Shown: positions 34,994 to 43,109, numbered from the stretch's first letter. The stretch is DNA of 64,000 bases from Blastocladiella emersonii ATCC 22665 (GCA_025594325.1 JANHCV010000010.1:620001-684000); one strand, 5' to 3'. Translations and numbers: made by a program. The notes: generated by a model from the sequence alone, not told the origin.

Positions 34994-37900
34994 CTACTCG
35001 ATGGCCTGGACCAGCTTGCTCTCGAGCGCGAGCGAGTAAAAGACCGAGTTGGGCCGCGCCAGCAGCGCCGCGGGCGTGTCGAACTCGGCCACCTCGCCGT
35101 GGTCGAGCACCAGGATCTTGTCATAGTCGATGATCGTGCCGATGCTAATACGGAAAAGTCAGTCTTGAGAGGGTGAGTGGGGTAAGGAGGGGAGGGGAGG
35201 GGCGGGGGAAGGAGGGAGGAGAGCGCACCGGTGCGCGATCGTGATCACCGTGCAGCTGTCAAACTCGCGGCGGATCGTCTCCTGGACCAGGTTGTTGGTG
35301 GCCGCGTCGATGCTGCTCGTGGCCTCGTCGAGGACCTGGCGGAAACGAGGGGGCGAAATGAGGTCGAAGGTCAGCAACCTGACCAACCACGCCATCAAGT
35401 GACAAAAGCGTACCAGAACCCGCGTCTTGCGCAGAATCGCGCGCGCGAGACACAGCAGCTGCGACTGCCCGACACTCAGCGTGGACGCCTTGATCGGCGC
35501 GTCGAGCGCCCCAGGCAACGCGGCGATCGCGTCCCGCAAATGCGCGGCGTCGAGGGCGGCCCAGATCTTGGCGTCGGACCGCGACGCGAGCGGGTCGAGG
35601 TTGTCGCGGATGCTCGCCTCCATGAGGTACGCGTCCTGCGGCAGGATCGTCAGCTGCGTGCGCAGGTCGTGCAGGCCGAGCGTTGCAATGTCCAGCCCGT
35701 CGATTGTGATGGTCCCCGACGCGGCTTCCATCAGGCGGAACAGGGTCGCGGTCAGGGAGGATTTGCCGGCGCCCGTGCTACGATTGAGTTCGGGAGGGGG
35801 GTTAGCGCGCGAGCATGACGCGCGGGTGGACAGGAACACGCGTACCGGCCAACGATCCCAATCTTCTTGCCGGCCTCGAACTTGAGCGAGATGTTCTTGA
35901 GGACAAGCGGGAGCCTGGGGCGGTACGCGACCAAGTAGTCCTTGAACACAATCTCGCCGCAGCTGGGCCACGCAGGGTCGAGCGCAAAACTCGTCTCCTT
36001 GGGCGCCCCGCTGGGCAGCGCCGTGTACTTGCGGATCCGCTCGACGCTGATCGCGCTGGCCTCGAGCTGGCCGTACATGCGGATGAGCGTGGAGAGGAGG
36101 TAGACGAGGTTGACCGAGGACAACTTGATCCCACCATGATCCTGACGGGCGAGGGCCACGCCTTTTCCGCCGGTACGCCGCTGCACCCGTTCGGCCGCTG
36201 CACGCAGTGCTGCTGACCGCCGCGCCGCGACACGTAGGCGGCGACCTTGACTCTTTGCAGAAGCGCATCGAGGCGTCCAACCTGACCAACGTACTGACCA
36301 TGCGCGCCTTGCGCATTGTACATGAAGACTGATGATTTAATTATGTTTCTTTTTTTTTCGCGCATTGACGCAGTGGAGATGGGGACCATTCCCGTGGAGA
36401 CAGTGAGAAACAATCAGGCGCAAGTCACGTGATGCTTTGTAACGATCGATTGCTGCTGCGACGTGGCGTCGAACTGCGCTCGCCGCGACGTCTAACCTGC
36501 CTCTTCCCGCACCAACACGAACGCCATGTAACCTCCTGCAATCGCGCCAGAACCCCTGATCGCGCTCTCCCCGCCGCCGACCGCACCAACACCCAGTATC
36601 AAACTCTCCTTCTCTCCCTCCCCGCCGCTCGACTGCGCCGACACACCACCACCACCTTCACCATGCCAACCCACCCGCCGGCCGTCGTCCAAGCCTTCAT
36701 CATGGAGATCCTGGCTTGCCACTCCGGCGCAGCGCAGCCCCCAACAGAGCCCAAGCGGTGGCCCAGCGCATCGACGGTCCTCAGGCTCCTCCATGAGATC
36801 GGTTGCAGACATCACGACATGTCCCGCGTCAAGCTCAACACCGCCGCCACCAAAGACCTCCCGATCCTCGGCGAGGACGTGCCCAAGTGGGTGCCGCCGC
36901 TGCGCAACCCCGCTGTCCCCGCCACCCTCATCAAGTCGCAGCTGCCCGCCAACGAGTTTGCCGGCATCCCCTCGCTTGGCCACCAGGTCCTCACCGAGCT
37001 CCGCTTCATGTTCCTTGTCAAGCTCGTCGAGCACCTCAGCACCTACGCCTCCATCCACGTTGCGTGCAGAAATGCCGCCGGCGAGCTGGTGTGGGTCCGC
37101 ATCACGCTCAACAACATCATCATCAACCAGAACGGCCCGCACGAGTACATTGAGTTCAAGCACTCGCAGCAGTCCTCCTGTTCGTTTCTCGCCACGCCCG
37201 CCCTGCACCTCCCCTCGCGCGTGGGCAAGATGGACAAGAGGGGCAACAAGTTCCTGGCTACGGTGCCTGCCAAGTCTGTTCCGCGCACGGCCTGCAACAT
37301 CAAGGAGCAGCTGTCTTGCAGCAACTACGCCGTGCAGTTCCGCTTTCGATTCGACATGGGCAAGTCGGCGCACGCCGCGCCACCGGCCGACCCCGTCGGC
37401 GCGCTGTCGTTTGCGCATCCTCTCGGCCTTGCGACCGTGGACAAGGTCAACACTACCATCAAGCTGTACGGCTACTGGCTCAGCGACGGCACCATGGACC
37501 GCAGCTCGAAGATCCTGTTCTACCTGACAAAGCCCCAGGACGTCACGTACCTCGACAACCTGTTCAAGCGGCTCAAGCGCGTCCTGCCACCGTCCAACAA
37601 GAACGGCATGACCAAGGTCCTGATGCCTTCGAGTAAGACAGTGTACACGATCAAGAACCAGCAGTGGGTCGAGTACTTTCGCTGTGCCTACCAGCACAAG
37701 TACGTCAAGTTGTTTGGTCACAATACCCAGCAGCTCAAGTACCTGATCAAGCCCAAGAAGCCCGTGCCCATCAACGGCCTCCCGTTCGCCGCCGTCCAGA
37801 TCCCCAACACGCCGTTCCTCACGCTTGAGGCCGAGTTCACGCACTTGGTCAAGTGGTGCCTCGGGTGGGTTGGTTTGGAGCTCAACCCGGACCAGATCAA

Positions 37901-40900
37901 GCTCTTCCTCCAGGGCCTGCGCTTCGCCGACGGCAACGAGTCGCAGGGCACGGCGTGGGGCGGCTCAATCTTCACCTCGTCGGAGCGCTTCTGCGACCAG
38001 GTGGTCCTTCTCGCCATCCTCGCAGGCTACTCGGTCATCGCTGTCCACAGGGTCAATGCCGGTTACTCGACGCCGGCGACCTTGGGCACGACTACTGCTC
38101 ATGGGTGGTCGGTCAACTATGCCACCAGCACCAACGTGACCAACTCCCACGGCACCGCCTCGGCCGACCTGCAGTGCGTGGACGGACCGGCGTGGAGCCT
38201 CATCCTGGACAACCCCAACGCTGTCTTCATGGTGCGCCAGCTGCCCGAGGTCGCCGCCAATGGCGTTGTGCCACACACGGGTCGCCCCGTTCTTGTTTGC
38301 GCGCAACACACATCTCCGGCGACTGGTATTGTTTCTGGCTCAGCTGGTCCCTTGGCTTTCACTCACGCACCCAAGCGTTCCATACAGAGCTCGCTCCCCG
38401 CATTTCTGCCGCCAACCTTCTCGCCACGCTGCCACGCGCTCCCGTCACGTCCCTGCAGCTGCACGACCCAACCAAGACGCTGCAGCCATGCGTGCCTGCC
38501 GTTGCCGCCGAGCCCGTCGCCACCGTACCCGAGATCGCAGCGGTCCCCGTTGCTGCTGTATCTGAGATCGCAGCGGTCCCCGTCGCCGCCAAGACTGAGA
38601 TTGCAGCGGTCCCCGTCGCCGCCAAGACCGAGATCGCGGCGGTCCCTGTTGCCCCGGCGGGGACCAGTTCGCAGGTCCCGCCAACCCGTAAGCGCAGCGC
38701 AACCCAAGCGCCCGCTGCGCCCGCCGCTGCCGCCAAGAAGCCCAAGGTCACGTCGGCATCCTCCTCCTCGTTGGCATCTTCCTTGTCAACCACGGCGCCC
38801 GCGGCTTCGGCAAGTTTGGCCACAACGCCCACGGCTCCTACAAGCTCTGCCGCACCGACAACCTTGGCGGCGATGCCGGCCATGCAGACGATCTCGCGTC
38901 CCTCCGTGTCCGAGGTCAAGACGCTCGGTCACTTCTGGCCCAGTCGCCCAGGCCTGACGTACACCTGGGGGGTGCGTGAACACCATCATGTGACGTACTA
39001 CAGGGTGTACGAGGTCAACAACAGTAGCAACCACGACGGGGGGCCATTGCGGTTTGTGGGCTACTGCAAGTTGCGCCCAAAGGACGGCGTGCGCGACTTC
39101 TGCGGCGTGTAATAGCGACGCATGCCACACGCTCTCTCTCGATTCCCTCGTACCCTTGCACTTGTTTCTGGCGCCCACTCACTGTTCATTGTGAAGGCGA
39201 GCGGGCCACCATTGGGAGGGGTGGGGCCCAATGGAACTAGTTTGAATATATGAGTCTTTATTCCATACAAGAAAGGCATGGCCGCTATTGCACGTAGCCG
39301 ACGTTGAACAGGATCGAGGCAATGCTGACAGCGACCGTGATTCACAAACCAAACCAGAGTAGTTGAGGGCGACGGCCATGGTCGCCAAGTTGCTGCTGGG
39401 CAGGACAACGGCCAGGACCATGATCACGGCGATGATCACGTTGCCGAGCTGCTGCAGCTGCAGGAACAGCCACCGGTTCACCGACACCTGGTTGTAGGTC
39501 CCCGTCGACGACGTGTCAAACTTGGCCTCGGCCGCGCGCAGGAACCGCGCCTCCTCGGCACCGCCAGTCCCGCGGATCACCGACAGCCCCGCGAGCGTCT
39601 CGCTGAAGTGCGTGTACACGGGCGACGCGAGGACCAGCACGATGCGCTGCAGCTCGCGGCTGACGGCAAGGTAGATGCGCTGCAGGAACAGGAAGACGAC
39701 GGCGAGCGGGACCAGGACCACGAGGAACCACGGCGTCGCGATCACAATGGTGCCCACAATGAACGCGCACGAGAAGGCCGTCCAGATAAAGTGGTCGAGC
39801 AGCTCGGGCAGCACCGCGTCGACCTGGTTCTGGTCGCTCGACAGCCGGTTGAGCACGCGGCCCGCGGGCGTCGTGTCGAAGAAGCTCATGGGCGACCGCA
39901 GGATCGCGTGCAGCATGCGGTCCATGGTTGACCGCGCCCCGCGCACCGCTGACACCACCATCGAGTACGCAATTGACACACCATTGATCCCCGCGCCGCC
40001 AAACGTGATGGCCCCGTACACACCAAGGTAGAAGGCCGTGTCGCCGCCCTCGCTGCGCTTCAACGCCTCGCCCCATGCCGCGAGCCAGTACGTCACGCCC
40101 ATGGACACGACGGTCCCGAGCGTCGTCGTCAGCAGAACCACAGCCATGTTGCCTATTCCGCAAGCCTGGAAGTACATCCAGAAGACGCGCCAGTTGACCG
40201 AGCCCGTCGCGGCCGTCTCGGCGTTGTTGTCGCCGTCGTCGCACTGGGTATTGTCCGACAGGAGGTGCTCCGTGTCGGCGTGCAGCTGGTGCTGCAGCTG
40301 CTCGGGCTTGACGTTGGCCTTCTTGGCGGGAACGACAGCGAGCGTCTTGGACGAGTCGTTGACAGAGGACGCCAAACCGCCGCCGCCAGTCGCGGGACTC
40401 GCGTCGTCACCGCCACTGACGCGCTTGGCCTGGTACTCGTTGACCATATTCGCGACGCGCCCGCCGGTGCGCGCCATGAGCTCGGCGTAGGACCCACGCT
40501 CCGTGATCTTGCCGCCCTCAACGAGCACGATTGAGTCGACGGCGGGCTCAGCGAGGTGGTGGATCGCGTGCGTGACAAGGATCACGGTCTTGCCGCGGAG
40601 CAGCCCGTTGCGCTTGTTGAACCACGCGTTGAACATGTGCGTCTCGACGTGCACGTCGACCGCGGCGAACGGCGAGTCCATGATGATCAGGTCCGCGGCG
40701 CCCATGGCGGCCGAGTACAGGGCGCGCGCGCACGAGATGCGGGCTTGTTGGCCGCCGCTGCACTACACGGTTGGCGTTGCGCAAGTCAGAATCCGCTGCT
40801 GATCCCGAAAGCCGAGTGAAAAGAAAACGTACGTTGACACCGCGATCGCCAATCATGGTCTCGTCGCCGTTGGCAAACACCTGGAGGTCCTTGACGAGCG

Positions 40901-43109
40901 CGCACGCGTGCATGACGCGGGCGTACTGATCAGCGTCGAAGGCGAGGCCAAAGGTCACATTGTTGCGGATCGTGTCGTTGAGGATCCAGGGCTTCTGCGG
41001 CACGCATGCTACCGAGCCCTGCAGCCGCACCGTGCCCGTGTCGCCGACGCGGTAGATCTCGCCGAGCGTGGCCGCGACGAGGGCCGACTTGCCCGCACCG
41101 ACCGCACCGACGATCGCCATCAGGGTGCCGGGCGCGACGGAAAAGTCGCTGACCGAGAGCACCGTGGTCCCGTCGACGAAGGCGAACTCGGCGTTGGAGA
41201 TCTGGACCGCGGGGCCCGTGGACTTGCCGTCGCTGGGGCTCGGCATGCGCTCGACGTACGGCGCGAGCTCGCGGGCGAGGAGGAACTCGTGGATGCGCTT
41301 GAGCGACGCGTAGCCCTCGAGGAGCGGGTCGAACCCCCACACGATGGCCTGGAGCGGGTGGTCGAGCATGCGCAGGATCGACAGCGTGACGAAGATGCGG
41401 TTGGCGTCGAGCGAGTTGGGCGGCGACACGAGCGCGTAGACGGCGAAGAGGAGGAAGCTCGAGATCGTGGGCACGACGAAGGAGATGGAGATCTGGCCCG
41501 CCATGAGCCACGCCTTGTGGCGGATCGCGTCGAGCTCCTTCTCGCGGTACGCCAGGATCCGCTCCCGCATCACGCCCGTCCACCCGTACAGCTTGAGGCT
41601 CTTGATGGCGTTGAGCGCCTCGGCCGACGTCTTGATGCGCAGGTCCGTCTGGGCGAGCGACGCGGTGCGCCAGAACGTGAGCCGGTCGGCGAACACGCCG
41701 AGGACGGGCAGGAACGCGACCATGCACCCGAGGGCCACGAGCATCGCCCACCCGACCTGCCGGTACAGCAGGTAGCACGCGACGACGAGCGAGAGCGGCG
41801 CCGTGATCATGTCGGCGAGCGCCATGATCGCGTTCGACACGCTGGTCGCGTCGACCTGCATGTAGTTGAGGATCTCGCCCGAGTCGGACGCCTGGTCGTG
41901 CGCCGGGATCCGCAGGCCCTTGCGGTACACGAGGTTCTGCAGCGCGGCCTTGATGCGGATCTGCTCGACGAACACGAAGTGGTACGCCTGCCCGAACAGC
42001 AGGCTGCCGACCGAGTTGACGGCAAAGAACAGGACCGCGACCACGACCCCCTCGCCCACCGGCCGTGCGGCGCCCGTCCCGCGGTCCGTCAGGTACGTAA
42101 TAAAGTACGAGATGAACGACGGCGTGGTGAACTGGAGCAGCGCCATGGCCGTCGACAGGAACGCGATCAGCGCGTACCGCACGCCGAACGTGCGGATCAC
42201 GGCGCGGTTGAGCGACGGCTGCATCTCGGCGTGCTTCCCCGCCGGTTCCGCTGCACGCATTTGCGCGACGCGCGTGCGCTCGGCGTCCCAGCTGGCGACG
42301 AGCCGGTCGCAGTTAGGCTTGGCGCGCAGGAACTCGGGGAGGCGCCACAGATCGGTGAGCTCGATGACCTTGCGGTTGCCGCGCGCGAGCAGGTCGTAGG
42401 CCCAGAAGAACATGAGTTTCGACAGGTACGAGGCCGTGAGCTCGGGCGACTCGCGCTCGCCCGCCGGCACCACGTGCGCGGGACGCGTCTCGCGCGGCTT
42501 GACCGACACGTTCTCGGCGAGGAGCAGGACGAGGGTCACGGCGAGCTGGGCCACGGTTACGAAGAGCTGAGCGCGCGGGGTCGCCGCATCGTCGAGGACG
42601 AGCGAACGCACGTGCACGGCGAGGTAGATGACGAGCATCCCGTAGAGGGAGCAGATGGACGTCGACGGGCGGCGGCTACGGTGGTGCTCGAGCGGGTGCA
42701 CGACGAGCGCGACGAGGGCGAGCGGGAGGCAGATGAAGGCGGCGCCGAGGATCAGGGCGGCGTAGCTCGTCGGGATCACGGCGGCGACGACGACCGCGGC
42801 AACGGCGAGGGCCAGGTTCAGCGCGCTCGCGGCCCGCTTGAAGTAATACAGCGTAGTCAGCTGCGCGCGCATGTCGTCGGGCAGCAGCGGCTTACGGGCC
42901 AGGAAGCGGCGGCGGTTGGCGAGCGCGGCGAGCGCGACGAGCGACAGGCATGGGAGCACGATGCTGGTCTGGAAGCAGAGGTCGAAGTCGAGCTCCTCGG
43001 ACTGGGCGACGATCGACTACGGGGTGTGCGAGCATGTGGTGAGCTCCTGCACTGGTTCCAGCGGGTGAGCGCGGCGTACCAGTCCTCGGCCGTTTGGACA
43101 GAACGTCAT
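34994..43109 (-). CDS. ABCC/MRP ABC transporter (TMD0-TMD1-NBD1-TMD2-NBD2), multi-exon, interrupted in TMD2 by a 3.24-kb insertion
   Basis: MTFCPNG..|..[11 protein letters not shown]; [11 protein letters not shown]; NBD1 [13 protein letters not shown]|[10 protein letters not shown]; [14 protein letters not shown]; NBD2 KIGIVGR|[39 protein letters not shown]. No lesion seen other than the insertion. Confidence 0.93.
36663..39112 (+). CDS. Free-standing intein-derived protein: Hint-N-like + LAGLIDADG (DOD) endonuclease + Hint-C-like + repeat linker + small C-terminal domain; ~795 aa; intron 38326-38387
   Basis: [41 protein letters not shown] (blocks A/B-like); LYGYWLSDG (37464-37490); [10 protein letters not shown] (37905-37934); [22 protein letters not shown]; [20 protein letters not shown]...GRPVLVCAQ (blocks F/G-like). 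A 62-nt GTATTG...ATACAG intron joins ORFs 36429-38957 and 37853-39112 in frame. Confidence 0.8.
38531..38652 (+). repeat. Coding minisatellite, 4 x 33 nt ([11 protein letters not shown])
   Basis: Repeated gagatcgcagcggtccccgtcgccgccaagact units. Confidence 0.9.

Follow-up and report, generated by a model that had tools for sequence, protein, structure and literature searches.

The 64,000-nt stretch of Blastocladiella emersonii ATCC 22665 DNA analysed here (GCA_025594325.1 JANHCV010000010.1:620001-684000, or G000:C2:620001-684000 in the assembly; called the window below) carries a gene for an ABCC-type ABC transporter on its minus strand (Pfam ABC_membrane 6.4e-30), and a coding exon of this gene is interrupted by an insert of 3,238 bp. 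The insert is a mosaic in which a 2,979-bp core with a single gene, here called the cargo, lies between a scrap of an enoyl-CoA hydratase (ECH) gene and a scrap of a major facilitator superfamily (MFS) transporter gene. The cargo protein has the motifs and the predicted fold of a LAGLIDADG endonuclease of intein descent. With a probability of about 0.6, the insert is a mobile endonuclease gene resembling the WHO10 genes of yeast, copied into a chromosome break by microhomology-primed repair and carrying fossils of its earlier sites with it.

A mosaic insert in a transporter gene

The interruption of the ABCC gene is precise. On the minus strand the reading frame runs to ...MAVALNYS up to 39357 and resumes at 36117, and the insert is bordered by GAG on both sides (Table 1). 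The second nucleotide-binding domain (NBD2) retains its Walker A, signature and Walker B motifs, the last exon is open to a stop at about 34994-34996, and the coding sequence of about 4.5 kb contains zero disabling lesions. A first-pass annotation, made from the sequence alone, had described a cassette in an otherwise intact ABCC gene with a 3-bp GAG duplication, both halves being open with Walker and signature motifs kept, and had proposed that excision of 36119-39356 plus one GAG would restore the exon; open reading frames (ORFs), translations and a comparison with the closest paralog bear this out. In that paralog (contig C19, locus L011), which is uninterrupted at the site, the sequences matching the two halves abut directly (bases 1426/1425), and therefore the only change to the ABCC exon is the 3,238 bp plus one GAG. 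A further seven ABCC paralogs share 67-77% DNA identity, with no recent duplicate among them. The insertion site falls in a conserved stretch at the end of the second transmembrane domain (TMD2).

Both junctions of the insert are bridged, at single-copy depth, by DNA contigs from four read sets of one source sample, and an assembly error as the source of the insert was rejected. A seeming double depth at 35706-35773 is due to k-mers common with an ABCC paralog and not to heterozygosity. In read set X4, loose contig ends at 37149-39478 consist of loxP-like linker letters, an artefact of a mate-pair library.

The insert itself is present in one full copy in the whole assembly, together with two partial matches. 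Its left scrap contains a partial exon of the ECH gene, a copy of the following intron (36173-36237) and a portion of the exon after it, and stops in mid-exon at ...MRA(F); there is a 1-nt deletion, causing a frameshift, in the first exon portion. The parent is the enoyl-CoA hydratase gene at C2:454 kb (Pfam ECH_1), and contigs of the genuine gene diverge from the window exactly at 36310. The right scrap is part of a transmembrane helix from the MFS transporter gene at C2:183 kb (Pfam MFS_1). It measures 67-69 bp, as homology continues through GA to 39358, and one of its codons has changed from TGG to the stop TGA. The present-day ECH and MFS genes are both uninterrupted at the breakpoints. 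Both lie on contig C2, as does the insertion, for which the chance is about 0.003; C2 makes up 1.74 of 32.65 Mb, i.e. 5.3% of the genome.

A genome search of 36300-36670 and 39105-39300 revealed no additional host-gene scraps, and the 2,979-bp core has no second occurrence in the genome. An 8-nt direct repeat, GCGCATTG, occurs at 36311-36318 and 36360-36367, flanking a 41-nt AT-rich patch. This arrangement directly adjoins the inner end of the ECH scrap, and may be filler of an older junction or a promoter element.

Table 1. Features of the interrupted ABCC gene and of its insert (window coordinates)
Feature	Position	Strand	Remarks
ABCC downstream part (TMD2 end from SVNLVYLL..., NBD2, last exon, stop)	34994..36118	-	ORFs, translations, paralog L011
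Left GAG	36116..36118		ECH parent has the same letters before the copied stretch (..ACAGAG/GACAAC)
ECH_1 pseudogene scrap	36119..36310 (192 bp)	+	83% identical to G000:C2:454047-454235(-), E 1.3e-46
Cargo upstream region (putative promoter and 5' untranslated region)	36311..36662	+	Single-copy in genome
Cargo exon 1	36663..38325	+	204 relatives, alignment A1, AlphaFold2 model, Foldseek
Cargo intron (predicted), 62 nt, GT..AG, phase 1	38326..38387	+	Frame change between ORFs, third-position GC of both frames
Cargo exon 2, stop TAA at 39110-39112	38388..39112	+	ORFs, repeat family D1
Cargo 3' region (putative 3' untranslated region)	39113..39289	+	Single-copy; GC 0.52, AT-richer than surroundings
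MFS_1 scrap	39290..39356	- (antisense to cargo)	81% identical to G000:C2:182673-182739, E 8.1e-9
Right GAG	39357..39359		MFS parent reads ..AACCAGA/AGG, GA in common
ABCC upstream part (TMD0/TMD1, NBD1, TMD2 to ...ALNYS)	39357..42959	-	ORFs, Pfam, paralog match

The insert lacks ends that would define it as an element. Neither terminal inverted repeats (TIRs), nor long terminal repeats (LTRs) or long direct repeats, nor a poly-A tract, nor Helitron ends were found in a repeat and end search, and the ORFs and Pfam matches include no transposase, the cargo gene being the sole real ORF. In this the first-pass annotation was correct, as it was in regarding the insertion as DNA-mediated: the ECH scrap still has its intron, and the cargo is predicted to have one. 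The same introns, with the lack of poly-A, rule out a retroposed copy. The description of the insert as a cassette needs one amendment: its outer 192 bp and 67-69 bp are diverged fragments of two other host genes, with no element-specific ends.

What defines the ends can be read from the parent genes. The ECH parent reads ..GTGAACAGAG directly before the copied stretch and ABCC reads ..GTTGACCGAG before the insert, with 7/10 bases identical, the final GAG included, while the MFS parent continues with GA. As the parental letters past the copied stretch are independent of ABCC, the chance of finding both GAG and GA at the junctions is about 1 in 1000. The 3-bp duplication therefore doubles as microhomology at both joints. 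It follows that the donor had longer ECH-like and MFS-like flanks, and that the extent of the moved DNA was set by pairing with the broken ABCC ends and not by element termini.

The age of the parts differs. The scraps are 17-19% diverged from their parents, with one disabling lesion each in about 70-130 coding bases, while ABCC is free of lesions, which argues that the mosaic was put together long before the ABCC event. The earlier claim of a recent event thus holds in relative terms, the insertion being young compared with the material inserted.

The cargo gene and its relatives

The cargo gene starts at the ATG at 36663 and runs antisense to ABCC. Two exons are predicted, with 2,388 coding nt and 795 residues; the exons were searched separately, and the join was only translated by script to give this residue count. 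Exon 1 encodes an N-terminal extension of about 100 residues, the N-part of a Hint domain, two LAGLIDADG motifs and the Hint C-part. Exon 2 encodes repeats, an Ala/Ser/Lys-rich linker and a compact C-terminal domain (about 38850-39109). The repeats, at 38504-38668, are four tandem 33-nt units of 11 residues (..EIAAVPVAA..) that lie between the intein-like core and the C-terminal domain. The NCBI model of this gene (H9P43_007679, 728 aa) starts at Met53 and also has an intron, with an earlier donor (window 38283-38387). That donor removes GRPVLVCA, a block kept throughout the intein family, and homology accordingly favours the donor at 38326. No disabling lesion is present in the 2,388 coding nt, the GC content at third codon positions is 0.87, and codon use correlates with that of ABCC at r 0.96. 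These values indicate that the cargo has been kept by selection and has long been resident in this or a closely related genome.

An exhaustive HMMER search recovered 204 relatives of the cargo, with matches that span residues ~102 to ~545. Many of these lie within long host proteins, such as DNA polymerase B (PolB; including a Pandoravirus cluster), PRP8 and hydantoinase B; these are inteins. The nearest relatives by sequence search are PolB inteins of the Pandoravirus cluster and PRP8 inteins. In the alignment of the family (A1), the pattern N-CFP...VVGN-T/S stands against A-GIP...VLVCA-Q in the cargo: Cys1 has become Gly, the terminal Asn has become Ala, and the +1 nucleophile is lost. As such, the cargo is unable to splice and has no means of hiding in its host gene. 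An intein is also encoded in frame within the gene of its host protein, whereas the cargo has its own ATG and is antisense to ABCC. By contrast with the splicing residues, both LAGLIDADG motifs are kept with their catalytic Asp (..YGYWLSDG.. and ..LQGLRFADG.., for ..YGYWLGDG.. and ..L.GLR.ADG.. in the family).

Structural modelling agrees with this assignment. An AlphaFold2 model built with the alignment reached a predicted local distance difference test (pLDDT) value of 80.7 and a predicted TM-score of 0.83; a model from the single sequence was unusable (pLDDT 33). Foldseek returned 7qsu (1.8e-10), PI-SceI (1ef0/1lws, 1e-7 to 1e-6), PI-PfuI and I-DmoI (~1e-3), and its full-length structural matches include endonuclease-bearing VMA inteins. 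The twice-repeated alpha-beta-beta-alpha-beta-beta-alpha fold of LAGLIDADG proteins is present in the model, and a Hint fold flanks the endonuclease domain, on the basis of the structure matches and of homology over both Hint halves. The first-pass annotation had called the cargo a LAGLIDADG enzyme, and homology and fold support the assignment even though Pfam is blank: searches of the cargo exons gave nothing useful, and LAGLIDADG_3, matched by 11 of the 23 aligned relatives, is not matched by the window protein. Other searches contributed less. A word-based protein search recovered only the cargo protein itself; phmmer and the A1 profile found nothing meaningful among PDB sequences, with no PI-SceI chain matched by the profile at E up to 1; and a feature search of the ESM Atlas with exon 1 gave weak leads towards LAGLIDADG and Hint proteins (0.77-0.82). 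The C-terminal extension of about 250 residues has no match in Pfam or the ESM Atlas.

Decayed relatives of the cargo remain at three other loci, on C15, at C2:1043 kb and on C1, and show that the family has occupied several places in this genome. A second subfamily likewise sat at several loci: the relics at G000:C2:1042645-1042986 and G000:C1:2963786-2964180 are dead members of it, with 74-75% DNA identity and a partly inverted order. The C15 relic (G000:C15:1677285-1681685; L030 3295-7938, minus strand) is split by ~3.3 kb of DNA with coding sequence for a transposase of PIF/Harbinger type (DDE_Tnp_4, HTH_Tnp_4) and for a Myb/SANT-like protein. No true intein of the family is left in the genome.

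Outside this genome, three metagenomic relatives in alignment A1 have also lost Cys1 and the terminal Asn, and two of the three (P0011 and a cluster mate of P0004) are stand-alone genes on their contigs. A relative of the P0004 cluster (Cys1 to Gly, terminal Asn to Asp) forms a separate gene beside aldo-keto reductase and PEMT genes on marine contigs (L036-L038). From these sequences, free-standing derivatives of the cargo's intein family may be widespread.

Two side observations concern the surroundings of the relics. Some short matches to other loci occur in the relic flanks on C1, C2 and C15. In addition, a ribosomal-protein-P2-like sequence (G000:C2:1044186-1044838) lies 0.7 kb downstream of the C2 relic and has a twin at G000:C15:1018340-1018673 (95% and 84% identical). 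The C15 twin is without a 324-nt spacer, a difference that reflects either an intron-less copy or the gain or loss of an intron.

How the gene may have moved

DNA can be captured at double-strand breaks through microhomology-mediated end joining or through synthesis-dependent repair that leaves templated insertions. The preferred reading places the insert among such events. The endonuclease gene would be selfish and mobile, carried to new places by the repair of breaks and not by a transposase. A double-strand break in ABCC with GAG on both ends would have primed on a donor copy of the gene through GAG microhomology, copying would have started within the former left flank of the donor (ECH) and stopped within its former right flank (MFS), and GA(G) would have let the newly made strand re-anneal. 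The two scraps would be fossils of places where the gene had inserted before, probably on this one chromosome, and the process a serial, short-range form of 'transposition' resembling that of the WHO10 genes of Torulaspora globosa. The location of both parents and of the insertion on C2 does suggest short-range moves along one chromosome.

The insert shares with break-capture events joints of 2-3 bp microhomology, the lack of element-defined ends and an arbitrary start and stop of copying. It is unlike ordinary capture in that the same endonuclease gene, one under selection, has been part of what was captured time after time. LAGLIDADG enzymes leave 4-nt 3' overhangs, and an ABCC break with GAG on both ends would fit a short staggered cut, for instance one with the overhang CGAG. 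The first-pass annotation had suggested that end-joining into such a cut could leave a short duplication; repair of a short-overhang break by end-joining or copying does fit the junctions, and the microhomology strengthens the break-repair part of that suggestion. That the enzyme itself cut ABCC is the least secure step, and the odds lean somewhat against it.

A number of points weigh against the preferred reading. Only one intact copy exists, in one genome, and the assembly contains no surviving donor. Lost paralogs or a related species could be the source of the scraps in place of the present C2 genes; 13 of their 25 differences fall at third codon positions, an excess that fits an origin from C2 genes, lost paralogs or a related species alike. 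No empty ABCC allele appears in the contigs of the four read sets from the one sample, from which a rare allele could escape. Moreover, the 3-bp match and the 2-3 bp microhomologies are short, and we infer the endonuclease activity of the cargo from motifs and fold only. Finally, we know of no sexual cycle in B. emersonii, which leaves homing-type drive uncertain.

The alternative that grants the enzyme the largest role is site-specific homing, in which ABCC ..GACCGAG followed by TAGTTGAGG.. would be the cognate target, cut by the enzyme, and the element would home into empty ABCC alleles. Such drive would make an insert that disrupts a gene easier to explain, this region of ABCC is conserved, and a short duplication is compatible with a 4-nt 3' overhang. 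Arrival here, however, was non-homologous and brought foreign flanks, and neither an empty allele nor a polymorphism is known from the four read sets. The comparison of target sites proposed with the first-pass annotation also came out negative: among the reconstructed ECH, MFS and ABCC sites (three sites, two of them older and reconstructed from fossils), there is no shared motif beyond shuffled controls, which speaks against strict specificity. Unrelated insertion sites had been named in advance as evidence against ABCC being the enzyme's own target, and the lack of a consensus goes part of the way in that direction, so that this candidate role of the site, proposed from sequence, is somewhat weakened. 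Site-specific homing is as such unlikely. The first-pass annotation had also suggested that the host might splice out most of the insert. In-frame GT/AG pairs do exist inside it (a donor at 39349 with an acceptor at 36124 or 36142, leaving 5 or 11 extra residues), and splicing-out by the host is only a possibility; the hypothetical 3.2-kb intron would be about 50 times the length of the introns observed here (62-65 nt).

At the other extreme, and marginally less probable than homing, a spontaneous break in ABCC could have been patched with a stray fragment that happened to hold the gene, the enzyme being uninvolved and maybe inactive or domesticated for another role. Microhomology joints and captured DNA are common products of end joining, and no target consensus emerged among the three sites. 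Yet a random 3.2-kb piece of the 32.65-Mb genome would include the gene only about once in 10,000 times, and old scraps had already been combined in the inserted piece, a sign that this gene has moved more than once. Furthermore, the ORF is still whole although the flanks around it have decayed, and relics lie at several loci. Carriage by a transposon that makes 3-bp duplications (CACTA, PIF/Harbinger) or by a gene-capturing Helitron is close to refuted. A target duplication of 3 bp would suit the former, the capture of gene fragments is typical of Helitrons and Pack-type elements, and Harbinger elements are active in this genome, where one splits the C15 relic. The insert, on the other hand, has no TIRs, transposase, TC...CTRR ends or 3' hairpin, and it is single-copy, with ends defined by microhomology with the target. 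Its ends, GACAAC... and ...AAACCA, lie between G and G/T with a 3-bp duplication, and not between A and T as for a Helitron.

Comparison with known systems and wider meaning

The closest known counterparts of the insert are the WHO10 elements of Torulaspora globosa, in which a stand-alone gene of intein-like LAGLIDADG type lies in an insert 2.8-6.6 kb long, accompanied by gene fragments termed 'molecular fossils' (PMC7282813). Three of the five WHO10 inserts interrupt a host gene, and their route of integration was described as 'not clear' (PMC7282813). They belong to the WHO/HO family (Coughlan et al. 2020, PMC7282813; Osborne et al. 2026, bioRxiv 10.64898/2026.08.13.744650). Like WHO10, the cargo is a stand-alone nuclear gene of intein-like LAGLIDADG type, with no exteins and with an added C-terminal region; it lies in an insert of a few kilobases that carries fossil gene fragments and interrupts a host gene with no flanking homology to guide integration, and its relatives decay to pseudogenes.

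There are also differences. The B. emersonii gene belongs to a member of the Blastocladiomycota and not to a budding yeast, and in sequence searches it is nearest to giant-virus PolB and PRP8-type inteins, with no sign of VDE/HO/WHO descent. It has no zinc finger recognisable with Pfam or the ESM Atlas, and no FBA1 fragment accompanies it. WHO/HO genes target FBA1 and replace its 3' half, whereas here ABCC is interrupted and not repaired. In addition, the scraps are internal pieces of genes and not 3' ends, the cargo has a predicted spliceosomal intron, and there is one intact copy only.

Similarly, Saccharomyces HO is an intein-derived, non-splicing LAGLIDADG protein made from its own gene, but it is a domesticated enzyme encoded at a fixed locus, with MAT as the site it cuts, while the cargo lies in a young insertion that breaks its host gene. 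With the inteins that carry a homing endonuclease (PI-SceI/VDE in VMA, and those of giant-virus PolB and PRP8), the cargo shares the two-part Hint domain with a double LAGLIDADG fold and sequence homology over residues ~102-545; unlike them, it shares no reading frame with a host protein and has lost the splicing residues. A bolder proposal, and a rather doubtful one, is that the cargo is an independent counterpart of WHO: an intein of giant-virus or PRP8 type would have lost splicing, become a free nuclear gene and then hopped along a chromosome by means of its own 4-nt-overhang cuts and microhomology-primed copying, taking some of the old flank each time. If true, this would provide the first junction-level mechanism for the 'transposition' of free-standing homing-endonuclease genes without flanking homology.

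To our knowledge, free nuclear mobile endonuclease genes derived from inteins have so far been known only from a few budding-yeast genera (WHO/HO). The B. emersonii case adds a second, unrelated lineage, in an early-diverging fungus, with the same signature of fossil fragments and an interrupted host gene, and its element looks like an independently derived version of the WHO10 kind. Its clean junctions allow a mechanism to be read, as the 3-bp duplication is also microhomology with both donor flanks. Should the enzyme prove inactive, the insert would still be a tidy natural example of serial templated insertion. If the preferred reading is true, it would provide a new LAGLIDADG enzyme with a candidate target. 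Moreover, it would mean that inteins have repeatedly lost splicing and then taken to 'transposition', and would link inteins of giant-virus type to nuclear mobile genes.

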